Notes: generated by a model not told the origin, from the sequence alone. A DNA stretch of 64,000 nucleotides from Trichosphaerium sp. ATCC 40318 (GCA_038496445.1 JALMLS010000478.1:1-64000), one strand, 5' to 3'. Shown: positions 31,102 to 38,576, numbered from the stretch's first letter. Numbers and translations: made by a program.

Positions 31102-31658
31102 TGTAGGCCTATAAAACCAAAATAAGGTGTTACCGCGCTACCACAGAGTACTAACCTGAATTAGGTCACGCAATCATTCTTCAGCGCGCCAGGCACAACA
31201 ATACGATTATCCGTTGTGGTTAACCATTCGACACATCGCTAACTACGCTAAAATAAGTGTTGATGCCGTAAAATACGCTGTTTGTGTTATGACTTGTTTT
31301 TCAAAGCGTTTGGTAGGTATGTTGAGTTCGCCCAATAATTTCCAATTTTACATCGACACAAAAACAGATCGTGTATGTAATACAAACCGCGCCTCAAATA
31401 GTAGGCAGCACAGCCACCAAAAACAAAAAAAAACAAAAAAGACCTGTTAACAGGTTCATGAAGGAGCATACCACAAGCTCACAGGATTTAACGTGCGTAG
31501 TGACATCATTTGACAGTTTGCAACAATGTCATTTATTCGTACAAGGTCAATTTAACTAAAAGGCGTTTTTACCCTATAATACTTCGCAGACGACTTATTG
31601 ATCGTGGAACTTTAGACACAAGTTAACGAATGTGCCATTCGAAATAATGCATAAGTAA

Positions 31659-34600
31659 ATGGCATTGGATTCAACCGTACAGGTTGCAGATATATACGAC
31701 TGTCCCATAGAATTCAGCCTCACAATTTTTGACAATGATGAGGGCGTTTGCGCGCTCTACCACAAATTCTTTAGTCGCGATCGCTTGGTGCAGATAAAAA
31801 AAGCCAACATTAGGGCTGAGAAATCTATGGATTGCCTCGTAATTCCTTGCCCTACTAGCTATGGAATAGCAGCCCCTGGAACTCCAACTCACCGACTACT
31901 AAAGTATGTACTTCCACAACACCTACGTTTAGGCCTGTCGCGCAGCATCACGCTATTATTCGAAAATACTGCACCCAACTTCTAAAATAGTAGGGAAAAC
32001 CAAACTAACGCCAGCAAATGCAACAATTAGTACCAGTAACTAACGTGACGCTAGGTACATGGGTAACGAATTCCACGATAGAGTACAAAGGGTTATATTG
32101 CGTAAATATTACGGAGAACAACAACCTGGGACGTCTTTCGTAGTTAAAACTAAAGGCGTGGTGCCTTATAAATATGTTGCTTTCACGTCCGTTTTTCGTG
32201 CAGTGACATCTAAAGGTACGCTTGAATCTAACGTCAAGATAGTTTAAACAGCATTTGGCTACTCCACACGCAGTAATATTCTTTTTTGAAACTAATCAAA
32301 ATATTAATCACAAAAATCACAGATTACGATATGGCATGGCTAGATCCTGTGTATGCACCAGATGACGCTATATACGCTGCGTTCAGGTACGGTTATTTGT
32401 CGGTTGTGATTAAAATGATCGCACCTGACAATTTTTTTTGTCCGTTTTGTCACTCCTCGTTCTTTCTACTCCCTGTCTTTTTTATGTTAACGCGTAATAT
32501 AACAGGGCTACACTTTTGGCTATTGTAAATCATAACAAGAGTTCTAAAAAGCATAAGATAAAGTCTGTGGCGTGCCCTAATTTCTTCACGGTATGATTGG
32601 CCGACGCGTGCACTTGCATTCAAAAAACCTCTATGCTATTTATTTGCTTACCTAGTTCTTGTAGTTACGTTCTTGTGCCCCTGGTGGCGACAAGCTCCCA
32701 ATCTCTAATTTTCATGAATGCGTTCGGCAAATGTACTTGGCTTACAAGTCAGTGTTGAACCCTCCTTCAAGGTAATATTAGCAATATAAACCTAGCCAAT
32801 CCATTCTCGAATTAAAATCAACCAAAGGCCATACGACCTGACAGAGGGTGTCAAAGCATTGCGAGAGATATTGCATTTGGATAGCTCCAAAGATGTTGAC
32901 GCCAATGTGAATATGAAGGAGCAGTTGATGAATGACACCTTTAGTGGCATATACTCCCAAGGAGATTTGAGATTGTTGATCAAGTGGGCCAGGGATGACA
33001 GCAAACCAGAATTGCGTTTTGCAGCAGCACGTGCAATTGCTTCTGCTCTAAACAGACCAGAGTAAGTCATGACATACAAAATTTTTTTGTTAACACTGGT
33101 TTGTTTCAGTCCTTCACAATTTGAATTGCCCAAGAGAGATATATGCGTTGAAGTTACCAACAAGGATACGGGTTGTATAGCCTATCTGCTCGAACTGATC
33201 CAGCAGAACAAGCTTACTGTTCATACTGAAATTCCGTACGTGACATTTGTAACGCCTTTATCTCATCTTGACACTTTTTATTTATTCTTGTAACTAGTTA
33301 CGATGACATTGTTTGGTTTGAAGAAATAGGTTCTGGTACAGCTGGTAGCGTACATCGCTGTTCGTGGAGAGTAAGTAGCTTTTGGTAGTAGTTAATGATA
33401 CTGATACATTGTGGTAGGGCTTTCCAGTGGCTGTTAAGAAGTTTAGAGATCGTGATCGTAACCGCGAAGATTTTTTGAAGGAACTATCCATCATGAGGTA
33501 CACTCTTTACTGTTTTTATTGTGTCGTGCTTGTCGTGCTTGTCATACTCACATTACAACTTAAGTGTTGTACAACACAAGAATTTGGTACAGTGTTATGG
33601 TGGCACAACAAGAGACGGACACATGCTGATTGTGCAAGAACTGATGCAAACCAACCTGTCTGATGTACTACACGAAAAGATGGTATCAACACCTTTGACT
33701 ATAAAGTTGCAAATAGCTTTGGGTGTTGCACATGGCATGATGTTTCTGCACTCCCACTGCAACCTCATCCATCGCGATTTAAAATCTCTCAATTTACTAT
33801 TGAGCGTTAGTGAAAGGGGTGATTTGACAGTACGTGACAGAACGCTCTAAATCCAAAAGTAGTCAACGCCACATTTAGGTCAAGATTTGCGATTTTGGCG
33901 TGTCCAGGATGATAGAGAGGCGCAAAGCAATGACTGGTAATGTCGGGTACGTGAATACTTGCTAATGCATTCTCGTTGTGTCTAATACTGTTTACATAGG
34001 ACTGTATCGTGGATAGCACCAGAAATATTCGAGCAACGCAAATATACTGAGAAGGCAGATATCTACAGGTATTTTAGGCTCATTATTTAAAATGAACGTT
34101 GCTTATATGTGATATAGTTTTGGTATTGTGCTTTGGGAACTTGTAACGCGAAAGATTCCTTTCGCAGACATTAACTCGTTCTCCATTCCTGTTGCTGTGA
34201 TCAAGGGTGAAAGGTATACCTAAATTTTGTTTGTTATTGTAAGGCTCATCCTTTTTCTTTACTTAGACCAGCCATCCCAAAAGATTGTCCTAGCACCTTA
34301 AAGAAGCTTATTCGAGTATGCTGGCACGGTAAACAGGCCAAGAGGCCGACTTTCCAAAAAGTGATTGAGACACTATCCGCCCTCTTGCATAACATTAGCC
34401 CATCCAAACATCAATTCAATATTGACTTTGTACTGAACAAGCACGCCAAAAGGAAAAAGCGGTTTATGCGATCATACGAAAATCAACGTTTACGAGAGGT
34501 CAAGGTACGCCAACGATTCTCGGTTTTCCCCCATGCTTTCAAGACGCACCTTTTGCATGGCACTCATCTCACATACTTCAGGGTGATTCCGACAACACAC

Positions 34601-36907
34601 AAGGAAGCTCTTCTGGCACTGATGTCATCACATCACAGTCTAGTAAGGAGAACTTGACATCGCCTGGCACCACAACTGTGGATACAGCATCCGATGTTGG
34701 CGATGGCTTCGTTTCAGAAACTTCAGAATGTGCGTTCATTCGCGATCCTTATCGTGCTTACTTGCGCTAGCGGATGTTATAAAGCATACAAGAACTGTTA
34801 CGTGTAAAATTCCGGACAAGTGGGCACCGCCTATTGCAAAGCTTGAGGTTCAAGTTAACAAGTACTTTTCGCGGTTAAAGCAAGATCTCGAACTGGGCAC
34901 TATTACAGTTGGCAGTGAGCGTTACTTATTGTTCAGGTACTGCAACACTCGAACGTTGTTTGTTAAATGATCTCCTCGCCTAACTGTCACGTAGAGGGAA
35001 TAGCCTTGCTGTTGATTTCTTTGGCATGGTAGAACATGTATTTGACTTTGACGACACTGTCGAAGCCAGGGAATTTGCTTCTAATTTCTTATACGATCTC
35101 GGCTACGCTCTTGGTAAATCTGATGCTTTGAATTTTTTCAAAAAGGTACCGCTGCAATCTCTCAGGTAGTTATTCTAACACTACGATATTTAGCACAAAA
35201 TTGACGATGTGGTTCACCGTAATAACGCAGGGCTTGTTCATATAGCCTACACAGGCATGGCATACGTCAAATTGTTGCCAGAAACGGTTTACGCTTCTGA
35301 TGAAGAAGATGAGATTATGATTTATGAACACGTTCAGAGTTTTGGTACCTAGATAGACCATTATTTCTTTTTCTTCTGCTTTACGCTATTGAATGACTAA
35401 CTCGGTGCGTATCAGAAAGTGACTCGTGGATGAAAGAAAACAAAGAGACAAACGAGTGCGTTGATGTGATGAGCGCCGCATACTTGTCAGGATGGGGTGA
35501 GGGCGCAACAGGCTCTGCACGTGTATCTGCAGAGGTACAGTGTAGGGCGCGTGGTGATTCTGTTGATAGATTCATACGTACAGTGCCTGTTAGTATCGAC
35601 AAAGAGGTAATCCCCATCTTCTATGCGTTGAACAAAACCCTTAATTTGCTGTTATTTAGTTCCGTACCTATTGCGAGCGACACAACATTGAAGCGCAGTT
35701 GCCTCGATTCTTGCGAAACAGAAATGATACAAATCCTTCCTTCAAGCCGAACGTCTCAATTGACCCTGGTATGCAAATGCCTGCTTTGTTAAAATACGTT
35801 GTTCTTCAATCTTATATTGTGGTTATTAGATGAGGAGTTGGGATGGTTTCAGAGAACATTTAAAAAGCTAGTAAAACGATCCAAGTCAAATCGTGACGGT
35901 TTCGCTAACAATCGCTCTTTCTCGCCTGGGAAGTTCTCAGCCAAACGATTTGGTCAGCCTACACTTACAGAAGATGGCATCGACAAGCGCGCAGCCAACA
36001 AGTTCCAGAATTTTGTAATCGATCCGACTGAGGTGCGCACGCAAATTTGAAAATAAATAGTAACTAAACATCCTCAACAGGGCACCGTAGAGATGGCTGA
36101 TGCACGTTGTATCTTGATGCGCGGTGACGCCGTATCATATGGATTTTACAGCTTGGTGAAGGACCTATTCGGCCCTGCTCAAGAGGTACTACCTACTCCA
36201 ATAATTCCAAAAGGCTTTGAACACTTTGCTAATTGTTTGTTAGCATTTGAGCTTCAAGTTTGCCTCAAAGTTCTTGTACGAACTGGGTAGAACGATAGGA
36301 TTGTCCAATCAACGCTGGTTTGTAGAGAAAATCAGACTAGGCACAAACGCTATTGAATGCGCCTTGTCCTTGAGTGTAAATATGGCCTACTTTGGATGGA
36401 CTGATTTAATCTTTCGCGACGGTCTCAGCTACAAGGAGATATTGGTACGACAACGCCTTTTGTTCGCCTCAAATTATTACAATAAACTTTACAACAGTAC
36501 TCATAACTTACACCATCGTTTAGAAGCAACGGGAGAATTTCAGAGTGTTGTGCGAGGCACGCAACTCTTTTGAATGCGACTCTTGGACCAAACGAGCAAA
36601 AAAGAACAAGCCAGGACACATGCAAGGTCAATGCGTGTGCTACATGCATGCTGGGTACATTGCCGGTTGGTTTGAAGCCAGTTTCGGTATGCCTATCATT
36701 GCTGTGGAGACGTCTTGCAGGGCAGGCGGTAGGAGAAATTGTCAATTTTTAGTGTGCCACAGGGATAAATTAAAGAACCACCTCCCTATTCGTGCCACCT
36801 CTTCAGTTCAAAACGAAGATATCATGTCCTTGTTGGCCAAGTTCAAGAAACACAGAAAAGAAAACTCCCCACACCGAAGGCAATCCATGTCTAGGAACGT
36901 AATGTAA
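31659..36907 (+). CDS. Macro-like domain + helical segment + TKL Ser/Thr kinase + two XylR_N/V4R sensor domains
   Basis: Macro-like RVQRVILRKYYGEQQPGTSFVV...IYAAFRATLLAIVNHN...IKSVACP; kinase IGSGTAG, VAVKKF, HRDLKSLN, KICDFG, GTVSWIAPE, DIYSFGIVLWEL; V4R repeats ending AAYLSGWGEGATG...EVQCRARG and AGYIAGWFEASFGMPIIAVETSCRAGGRRNCQF. Start codon uncertain. Confidence 0.85.
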
Positions 36908-37032
36908 CACTAACTGTACAAAATAATATAAACTCTCAGGAGTAAAATACCAATAACCTAAAAATGCCGGTTGCAATTGTTTTTATCAATTCTAGAGAAT
37001 TCAAATAATGCGCCCATGGGCAGGTTGAAACT

Positions 37033-38576
37033 TTACACAACTTGTAAAGGGTCTCTATCAGTTTCTGCAATCGTTATTTTGGCGTTTGGGAGGCTTTAGA
37101 AAGAGATTAATAACAAACAAAAATATCAAGTTGAGAATACGGACCTATCAGATAATCTTGATTTGAGTACTTTCAAGAACCCTCTCTCAGTGTTGGAGTG
37201 CTCACATAGAACAACGTGACTGCCTTTTTTCAAAGCAGCTAATGGACCAACACAGTTAGCACTTAAGCCGCCAAATACCAGACAATCAACGCGTACCTAA
37301 TACATCGTGGTGTCTAGCTTCTCCAGTCCAGTAAAGATCTGCTTTTGTCTTGCCAATTACTGACCAACCAGCACCAGGACAAGTAGCAACACTCTTTACC
37401 ATAGCATCAGGCTCATTTGTTGCAAGGCGTACATGTTCAAGACCCAAATGCGCCTTGATACAGTCAACAGCTTTTGACAATGGCATTGGCTCATCCAGGG
37501 TAATAACGCGTCCTGCTCCTTCTCCTTTGATAGGTGCATCCTCTGACTTTACAATATCCCATGCAGGCTCCTAATAATCCCACGACACCCATTAGCAAAC
37601 TAGTAAAAAAACCGTAATATGGAGAAAGTACCTCATAAGGATGTGCGCTATACATTGCCTCCAAGATGGCTGGTGTACCTCTCTTGGAGCAAACCATTCT
37701 CAAAAGTTGTTCGTCGACGCGTTCTAGTTTTCCCTTCTCGCCAACAACTAAAACGCAGCGTCAGTATTTTATAAAGCAAATATCTCGTCGTGCACATACC
37801 AGGGTTAGAACCCTTCAAACCAACAAAAGTGCCTTGCCCATCAATGGCAAAGGAGCAATCCGAGTAGTTGCCGATGATGCCTGCGCCAGCACGTGCCATG
37901 CTATTGCGCACTTTTTCAGTGTGCTCCTTGGGTACGTGCACGCTGATAGTGTACTGGCGCTCTGGTTTCGACTCGTAGTGTGGTGAAATGATGCTGGATT
38001 TACCCTTGAATGCCGAGATTAGCCAGTCCGTCATGCCATCTGCAAGCCCCCATAAGCGATGCAGTTAAGTTTAATGCGTTGGCGTACTGTTGGCCTTATC
38101 GAGGCACGTATGTGGACAGTATATTGGGATTCCGTCGCTTATTGCTTCTACCAAAAGAGCTGTTGAGGATCTTCCTCCTCCCCAGGTAAGCTTCTTTAAA
38201 CCAGAGAATATGACAGGGTGATAGCAGATAACCATTGTTCGCCCCGTTTTTGACAGGTCTTTGGCTTCATCATAAATAGATCTGTAGAACTCTATGTACA
38301 GTAAAAACGGAGCGTTTGTAAGTTTTTGTACCGTTTGTCAATAGAATATTGTCAATATCGGCTACATTTGGTGGCTCTGCGTAGTATAGGTTAGTGAGAG
38401 AAGAATGCGACTATTTTACGAACCAACAAGCAAGCCAGTATTGTCCCAGCTTTCAGTTAAGCGTAAAGGCGCAATAGTCTAACGTATTACATTATTACTC
38501 GCAAAAAACTGTGCTGTACGTTTAATGTTTTTAATATTTGCTTTATTGGCGTGGATGATGTTTCTTTAGTGCTCAT
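37033..38576 (-). CDS. NIF3: NIF3/YbgI family protein with a YqfO-type PII-like insertion
   Basis: APLRLTESWDNTGLLV, CYHPVIFSGLKKL, YCPHT, VATCPGAG, YWTGEARHHDVL, CEHSNTERGFL, ETDRDPL; insert GAGIIGNYSDCSF...AHPYEEPAWD. Confidence 0.9.

Follow-up and report, generated by a model that had tools for sequence, protein, structure and literature searches.

Effector-binding domains composed of XylR_N and V4R parts are described in the literature searched as prokaryotic input modules, and Podar et al. 2008 (PMC2253512) describe V4R itself as a bacterial and archaeal domain with a link to the Bet3 family of eukaryotes. The MopR sensor domain is a homodimer in which C155, C181, and C189 bind zinc, at a site regarded as structural, and H106 and W134 anchor the hydroxyl of phenol (PMC9556785). 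Regulators of the XylR/DmpR/MopR type carry a single copy of the domain at the N-terminus of a dimerising AAA+ sigma54 activator. The gene described here is located on the + strand, at positions 31659-36907, of a 64,000-nucleotide stretch of DNA from Trichosphaerium sp. ATCC 40318 (GCA_038496445.1, JALMLS010000478.1:1-64000), which is referred to as a whole as the window. Unlike the bacterial regulators, its product contains two tandem copies of the domain, placed C-terminally on a protein kinase; modelling strongly predicts each copy to be a complete XylR_N + V4R effector-binding domain of the MopR/PoxR/DmpR type. The protein would, with moderate confidence, be a soluble signalling protein in which a tandem ligand-sensor cassette regulates a kinase of the mixed-lineage kinase/tyrosine kinase-like (MLK/TKL) type. 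The effector domain is of a known, bacterial kind; new is that it is duplicated and wired to eukaryotic outputs across the Amoebozoa. Full-text literature searches returned no paper on V4R in amoebae, on V4R-kinase or V4R-RasGEF fusions, or on a V4R domain in a signalling protein of an amoeba or another eukaryote. A characterised orthologue of the same architecture was also sought; orthologues are present in public protein sets, either without names or named for RasGEF only, and none is characterised in the literature searched.

The assignment of the two modules is based on profiles, motifs, and structure comparison. A hidden Markov model (HMM) that was built locally from the orthologue modules matches both of them from end to end (Table 1). 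The exon piece 36524-36904, belonging to module 2, passes the gathering score of Pfam V4R (PF02830; 38.5 bits versus 31, E 1.2e-9); module 1 of the window gave no Pfam V4R match when searched by exon pieces, but two V4R stretches are reported for orthologues. Between the two window modules, identity is 26%. All motif strings by which an earlier note on this DNA had recognised the copies, as well as the boundaries it gave for the gene, are recovered in exons of the + strand, with GTITVGSERYLL at 34771-34936, GTVEMADARCIL at 36081-36185, FLYDLG in exon 34995-35145, FLYELG in exon 36244-36444, SFE|SD split by the intron 35345-35415, and SFECD together with AGYIAGW...E..C.......C.F in exon 36524-36907. 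Module 2 keeps all four zinc ligands in the arrangement C-x22-E-x2-C-x7-C (amino acids (aa) 1144-1180), with E178 of MopR presumably being the fourth ligand. By sequence, module 1 of the orthologue P0005 matches the MopR sensor domain at residues 63-192 (E 0.008), and the zinc ligands of both fall at corresponding positions.

The fold of the cassette was modelled with AlphaFold2 on residues 480-1040 of the orthologue P0001, aligned with 14 relatives and with nine window exons as rows. Over both modules, the model has a mean predicted local distance difference test score (pLDDT) of 80.9 and a predicted template-modelling score (pTM) of 0.86. In a Foldseek search, 18 of the 18 hits at E<=0.001 were MopR, PoxR, or DmpR, with a best E of 2e-7 and template-modelling (TM) scores by target of 0.75-0.79. 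With VIA-align, the model matched PoxR, MopR, and DmpR at Z 19.3-19.7 and a root-mean-square deviation of 2.5-3.4 Å over 189-209 residues. The next matches, at Z 10-12, were Bet3/TRAPPC3 and MJ1460, a V4R protein of archaea, and the module 2 part (model residues 330-512) gave Z 11-12 against MJ1460 and Bet3. An H-NOX-like haem sensor was considered as a candidate and rejected at Z 6-7, versus about 19.5 for the phenol sensors. The likeness to the A domains of MopR, PoxR, DmpR, and XylR (PDB 5KBE, 5FRU, 6IY8) would extend over the whole domain of about 200 residues and comprise the XylR_N + V4R composition, the equally placed Cys/Glu/Cys/Cys zinc motif, and the probable role as signalling input. 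Since Pfam scans revealed neither an AAA+ sigma54-interaction domain nor a helix-turn-helix domain with the cassette, its partners being a protein kinase or RasGEF, only the input domain is common with the NtrC-family sigma54 activators.

The kinase domain was recognised by Pfam on single exons, with PK_Tyr_Ser-Thr at 6e-15 for exon 10 and further matches, including Pkinase, for more exon pieces; the kinases of the orthologues match PK_Tyr_Ser-Thr at E 1e-51 to 1e-61. The catalytic motifs are all intact, namely GSGTAGSV (347-354), VAVK (364-367), HRDLKSLN (456-463), DFG (480-482), and APE (504-506), and the alphaC Glu is present (FLKELS). The nearest solved structures to the P0001 kinase (residues 135-400) are ZAK/MLT, DLK, TAK1, CTR1, MLK1, TNNI3K, and Roco4 (E 1e-46 to 1e-38), with one EGFR entry also ranking high. 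The domain looks like an active, MAP3K-like kinase of the TKL group, which agrees with the earlier assignment. Kinases of this type, such as ZAK/MLT, DLK, TAK1, plant CTR1, and Dictyostelium Roco4, have the HRDLKSLN-type catalytic loop in common with it, but, unlike the window protein, they contain no V4R or macro-like domains. A contig of one public run (X3; 34010-34139) fits the kinase exons, with 39 other letters replacing 34031-34118 and unlike sequence on both sides; it would most likely derive from a paralogous TKL kinase transcript, either of this organism or of a relative.

A single transcribed gene contains the macro-like, kinase, and V4R parts in the order claimed previously, as is evident from the single frame, the spliced contigs, and the colinearity with P0005. 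The coding sequence starts with the ATG at 31659 and ends with the stop codon at 36907; it comprises 3,705 nucleotides (nt) in 24 exons and encodes 1,234 aa, with no internal stop and with GT..AG at all introns. The window, with a G+C content of about 40%, is from a eukaryote genome, and in the three + frames of 31659-36907 stop-free stretches with pieces of one protein are separated by short gaps, as expected for a gene interrupted by numerous short introns. A prokaryote-style reading of open reading frames (ORFs) was rejected, since it yields fragments only, and so was a first automatic splice model, which removed too much, including conserved segments of the kinase and of V4R. Junctions lying outside contig support were set by frame, GT..AG, the local GTA...(T/C)AG pattern, and residue colinearity with the orthologues, leaving the acceptor of exon 4 (32539, 32551, 32557, or 32563) as the sole uncertain one.

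Transcript evidence was taken from contigs of four public runs which share words with the stretch and were compared with 31600-37000; the runs, from two studies, are labelled as probable RNA only, and intron-skipping contigs were taken as transcript-derived. Seven short GT..AG introns are skipped in spliced contigs, equivalent cut positions being allowed for, and one of them (36445-36523) is spliced in two runs. The spliced contigs connect the kinase C-lobe, the linker, V4R module 1, the inter-module linker, V4R module 2, and the stop codon; beyond the latter, contigs end at 36919 and 36958. Exon 1 is contained in the contig 31633-31888, which includes a leader of 26 nt, and exon 6 in the contig 32831-33060. 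By local blastp, the model aligns with P0005, a Rhizamoeba saxonica transcript (EP01130_P011824), in one alignment (aa 19-1218 versus 5-1174, 39.8% identity) and with P0001 over aa 202-1223 (49.9% identity); tblastn of the orthologues on the window is colinear. P0005 has the full architecture of the window protein, including the macro-like domain.

An exhaustive HMMER search with the last exon retrieved 463 proteins at E<=1e-3. Long proteins that match in two stretches rank highest, and the others match in a single stretch near residue 135-250. According to Pfam, PK_Tyr_Ser-Thr and V4R are combined in P0001, P0004, P0005, and P0007, with two V4R stretches in P0005 and P0007, and RasGEF and V4R are combined in P0011, P0013, P0014, P0016, P0017, P0018, and P0151, of which all but P0011 show a pair of stretches. 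The local module profile finds both modules in each of these proteins except P0007, and in P0001, P0004, and P0007 the kinase and two V4R modules are encoded in a single ORF. As the cassette occurs on RasGEFs too, it is a portable input module and not kinase-specific. The kinases P0001, P0004, and P0007 and the RasGEF-type proteins PRP89263.1 (Planoprotostelium fungivorum) and KAL6069552.1 (Balamuthia) have the two-module cassette and a conserved linker in common with the window protein, from which they differ in being from other species, at 40-50% identity, and, for the RasGEF type, in the output domain; none has a described function.

Two-module proteins were found in six named species. Of these, Rhizamoeba saxonica and Arcella intermedia are taken here to be Tubulinea, Balamuthia mandrillaris to belong to the Discosea, and Protostelium nocturnum, Cavostelium apophysatum, and Planoprotostelium fungivorum to the Evosea. 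Every named source is amoebozoan, and metagenome and run assemblies contribute more. On the RasGEF proteins (including P0061) of Protostelium, Cavostelium, Planoprotostelium, and Balamuthia, the tandem cassette is located C-terminally. In P0010, a Balamuthia protein of 1,966 aa (KAL6043570.1), the two V4R modules lie mid-protein, at about 300-520 and 786-992. NCBI names it a PPM-type phosphatase; Pfam at E<=0.001 finds V4R only, and it was not counted as a phosphatase fusion. It may be a merged gene model or represent a further, third type of output.

The history of the cassette was approached with a quick maximum-likelihood tree of 88 modules, consisting of 17 first and 17 second modules and every second of 108 single-module proteins, from which near-duplicates and fragments had been removed. 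All single-module proteins fall on one side of a branch with a Shimodaira-Hasegawa-like approximate likelihood ratio test (SH-aLRT) value of 97, module 2 forms one group (89), and the module 1 and module 2 sets of the kinase type are each monophyletic (99). This grouping places the duplication before the divergence of kinase and RasGEF carriers and indicates that the cassette travelled in one piece. The single-module relatives that were checked are bacterial, from metagenome-assembled genomes of Planctomycetota, Elusimicrobiota, and Sericytochromatia, and have an N-terminal XylR_N-V4R module followed by PAS and HisKA/HATPase or GGDEF/EAL domains. P0015, P0022, and P0023 are of this kind and represent the nearest non-eukaryote relatives (33-49% identity to the last exon). 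In the histidine kinases among them the sensor domain serves as kinase input, as it would in the window protein; they differ from it by their single N-terminal module and their two-component outputs, and they form a clade apart from all 34 amoebozoan modules. Such a pattern is consistent with a single ancient acquisition of the sensor domain or with inheritance from very far back. A recent transfer from bacteria was rejected, because the separate eukaryote clade and the spread over three groups of Amoebozoa argue for an old event. The suggestion that the domains were acquired horizontally is therefore possible for the bacterial-type sensor, but the transfer, if horizontal, would be old, and the tree, in which the bacterial sample is the top of one exon's match list, names no donor.

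At the N-terminus, a domain is found for which a macro fold is quite probable on the basis of modelling. Of the earlier description of this part as macrodomain-like, the fold level is supported by three structure searches with a weak model, while a sequence-family assignment is not: no Pfam match was obtained for the window exons (E<=1) or for P0005:1-330 and P0004:1-340 (E<=10), where the profiles Macro (PF01661) and Macro_2 (PF14519) were likewise unmatched, and neither single-sequence nor profile searches gave a PDB sequence match. A word-index search with P0005 1-205 returned nothing beyond P0005 itself, so that the alignment available for fold prediction is very shallow. A language-model feature search pointed to Macro clusters (score 0.88), which is to be taken as a lead only. 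P0005 shares the domain, as seen from tblastn to exon 1 (38% identity over 87 residues, E 5e-12), and part of it is also present in P0004 and in a short piece upstream on the P0001 contig; in the contigs of P0001 and P0004, about 210-225 nt precede the start of the gene, and only short upstream pieces were recoverable. The model of P0005:1-215, calculated with the window exons in the alignment, shows an alternating strand-helix order. Parts of exons 1 and 5 had been misplaced in the MAFFT alignment (A1), which may have lowered its quality. With this low-confidence model, Foldseek against PDB returned almost exclusively macro domains, including the Ymx7/Poa1-like 1NJR, OiMacroD, YmdB, macroH2A, and DarG, with a best E of only 3e-3. 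VIA over 48,161 chains gave Poa1p (Z 7.1), DarG (6.8), PARP9 macro 2 (6.7), and Af1521 (5.7), all below the safe Z of 8, as well as macro-fold N-domains of leucine aminopeptidases (also Z < 8), and the ESM Atlas gave Macro clusters at TM 0.49-0.50 over about 141 residues.

The glycine-rich loops of this domain are degenerate, as the earlier note had remarked. In the window, the place of the first is taken by PCPTSYGIA in exon 1 and that of the second by CPNFFT in exon 4 (32540-32590). In general form, the first loop, following the first strand, reads P(C/M)PT(S/A)(Y/F)GIA with one Gly, and the second CP(N/D)F(F/Y)(T/A)L with no Gly; these altered forms are conserved in P0005, P0004, and L001. 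Judged by these loops, a working ADP-ribose site is unlikely. The domain would resemble Poa1p (6LFQ), DarG (5M3I), PARP9 macro 2, Af1521, and Toxoplasma MAF1B (6BXR), the last being an example of a non-binding macro-like domain, in a probable three-layer alpha/beta/alpha topology and in the order of strands and helices. Unlike canonical macro domains, it is not a member of the macro sequence family and has its phosphate-binding loops replaced, and the evidence for the fold is weak.

In the mechanism proposed here, the cassette would provide two effector-binding domains, each having a buried pocket adjoining the zinc site, behind the MLK/TKL-type kinase. The two modules would pack together in one chain and replace the homodimer of the bacterial sensors; a fixed mutual arrangement is suggested by the pTM of 0.86 over the 561 residues of the model. 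By occupying one pocket or both, a small, probably hydrophobic ligand would alter the cassette, and this change would either relieve or impose inhibition of the kinase, comparable to the de-repression of the ATPase when an effector binds to the A domain in XylR, DmpR, and MopR. The N-terminal domain, most likely a macro fold without the canonical ADP-ribose loops, would act now as a docking or regulatory domain.

Several observations weigh against this mechanism. In module 1 of the window (aa 852-888), Asp is present at the positions equivalent to C155 and C189, with the equivalents of E178 and C181 kept. Unlike in MopR, the phenol anchors are not conserved, the equivalents of H106/W134 varying among orthologues from Met/Asn in module 1 of P0005 to Ile/His in the window and Ile/Tyr in P0001. 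Further, it was P0001:480-1040, aligned with rows of window exons, and not the window protein that supplied the fold evidence; the intramolecular pseudo-dimer is deduced from the high pTM; the N-terminal model is of low quality (pLDDT 55.8, pTM 0.55); and the ligand, its binding, and the regulation are predictions. The loss of metal-binding cysteines in the first V4R and their retention in the second had been seen correctly in the earlier note, which concluded on one structural and one ligand-binding copy. This conclusion could not be upheld. Because the orthologues P0001, P0002, P0004, P0005, and P0160 keep all zinc-site cysteines of module 1, the Cys-to-Asp changes are, from sequence comparison, local and lineage-specific, and not the sign of a division of labour. 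Across seven kinase-type orthologues, conservation is slightly higher in module 1 than in module 2 (mean identity 50% versus 45%; 35 versus 30 invariant columns), and a module that is at least as conserved as its partner is a poor fit with a decayed "structural" copy. Since the H106 and W134 anchors are not kept, phenol is unlikely as the ligand, and no specific ligand class, whether phenols or aromatics, is indicated; the missing anchors argue against this ligand and not against the fold.

Alternatively, the cassette might be a scaffold or a membrane or lipid anchor, similar to Bet3/TRAPPC3 with its buried palmitate, by which kinases and RasGEFs would be localised to a membrane or complex. 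In structure, Bet3/TRAPPC3 indeed ranks second to the phenol sensors (Z 10-12), conservation of the phenol anchors is lacking, the inter-module linker contains a conserved basic helix of amphipathic appearance, and RasGEF and kinase partners are both membrane-acting. This role is nevertheless considered unlikely, given that the match to MopR/PoxR/DmpR is far stronger than that to Bet3 (Z about 19.5 versus about 12), that the XylR_N part and the zinc motif, both missing from Bet3, are matched, and that in the bacterial relatives the domain provides the input to histidine kinases and GGDEF proteins. Sensing of redox state or of a metal through the Cys/Glu zinc sites, instead of an organic ligand, would be in line with the C..E..C..C motif in both orthologue modules and in module 2 of the window, and MsvR is described as a V4R-domain regulator with redox-sensitive cysteines (PMC3729527). 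Against this stand the zinc site of MopR, regarded as structural (PMC9556785), and module 1 of the window, in which two Cys are replaced by Asp without other decay, as would be more readily understood for a structural metal site than for a thiol switch; a redox or metal sensing function appears very unlikely.

With regard to the N-terminal domain, a working ADP-ribose reader or hydrolase would link ADP-ribosylation signalling to the kinase, and the dominance of macro domains in the three structure searches and in the language-model feature search speaks for it. It is held to be quite unlikely in view of the replaced Gly loops, with their altered form conserved in P0005, P0004, and L001, of the unmatched Macro and Macro_2 profiles even at E 10, and of the model statistics (pLDDT 55.8, Z < 8, Foldseek E no better than 3e-3). 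Finally, the architecture could be an artefact of the gene model that joins separate neighbouring genes. No single contig covers the whole gene, the junctions of exons 1-8 are predicted and not observed, and a contig of run X1 (33803-33953) is unspliced over the predicted intron 33830-33878, which could be a retained intron, pre-mRNA, or DNA. However, one uninterrupted frame runs over 24 exons, spliced contigs connect the kinase C-lobe to the stop codon, the P0005 transcript has the same order throughout its length, P0001, P0004, and P0007 each contain the kinase and two V4R modules in one ORF, and the downstream NIF3-family gene lies outside, on the other strand, from 37286. An artefact is accordingly extremely improbable, and the preferred reading remains that of a single signalling protein with a tandem sensor cassette.

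With this gene, the use of a canonical MopR-type sensor domain with zinc site is extended to the eukaryotes, in the form of a conserved tandem cassette on MAP3K-like kinases and RasGEFs of three major groups of Amoebozoa. If a ligand binds, the cassette would give small molecules of the cytosol a direct input to eukaryotic phosphorylation and Ras pathways. It is possible, although tentative, that an intracellular chemoreceptor family has arisen throughout the Amoebozoa, in which a bacterial-type domain was duplicated to a single-chain pseudo-dimer and wired to kinase or Ras signalling, and which may allow amoebae to detect hydrophobic or aromatic metabolites from their bacterial prey or their surroundings with no need for a receptor in the membrane. 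The cassette would also be a dated example of a bacterial sensor domain whose duplicated form was passed around, as one unit, between different eukaryotic outputs, and, as a portable two-domain unit, it could serve the engineering of ligand-controlled kinases.

Table 1. Coordinates of the kinase-cassette gene and its parts, counted from the first letter of the window.
Feature	Positions	Strand	Exons or residues	Basis
Degenerate macro-like domain	31659-32771	+	exons 1-5, aa ~20-215	orthologue model and structure searches
Helical spacer	32828-33235	+	exons 6-7	conserved in orthologues; tblastn to P0001, P0004, P0005
TKL/MLK-type protein kinase	33298-34410	+	exons 8-14	Pfam on exon pieces, catalytic motifs
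V4R module 1	34842-35588	+	exons 16-19, aa 706-895	module HMM E 7.8e-62, end to end
Inter-module linker	35589-35978	+		motifs LPRFLRNR.DT and WFQ..FKKL.KR; mostly low pLDDT, one helix in model
V4R module 2	35979-36763	+	exons 21-24, aa 988-1187	module HMM E 1e-68, end to end; C..E..C..C complete
C-terminal tail	36764-36907	+		conserved LLAKFK..R..SP, then stop codon
Exons 1-6	31659-31903, 32055-32215, 32323-32405, 32540-32590, 32665-32771, 32828-33061	+		
Exons 7-12	33110-33235, 33298-33370, 33418-33497, 33565-33829, 33879-33946, 34000-34068	+		
Exons 13-18	34118-34213, 34267-34504, 34582-34729, 34771-34936, 34995-35145, 35194-35344	+		
Exons 19-24	35416-35606, 35660-35768, 35830-36032, 36081-36185, 36244-36444, 36524-36907	+		
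Introns seen spliced	34214-34266, 34730-34770, 35146-35193, 35607-35659, 35769-35829, 36445-36523	+		public contigs
Seventh spliced intron	~34937-34994	+		contig one base different from window there

The helical spacer between the macro-like domain and the kinase shows a weak HEAT-like signal (Pfam HEAT_2, E 0.0055), which is below the cut-off. Outside the modules, several motifs are conserved among the orthologues, namely LPRFL(K/R)NR.DT and the basic helix WF...FKKL.K, FxIDPT before module 2, and LLAKFK..R..SP in the tail; those of linker and tail could be docking, membrane-binding, or phosphorylation sites. The intron density of the gene family is very different among amoebae. Compared with the 24 exons of the window gene, the kinase and V4R parts are an uninterrupted ORF of 3.2 and 4.8 kb, respectively, in two relatives (L001:1-210 and L002:1-225), in which the upstream macro-like part is split by introns. 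The downstream neighbour of the gene, at 37286-38034 on the - strand and convergent with it, belongs to the DUF34/NIF3 family (Pfam 2.2e-10 on 37286-37486) and has short introns too.

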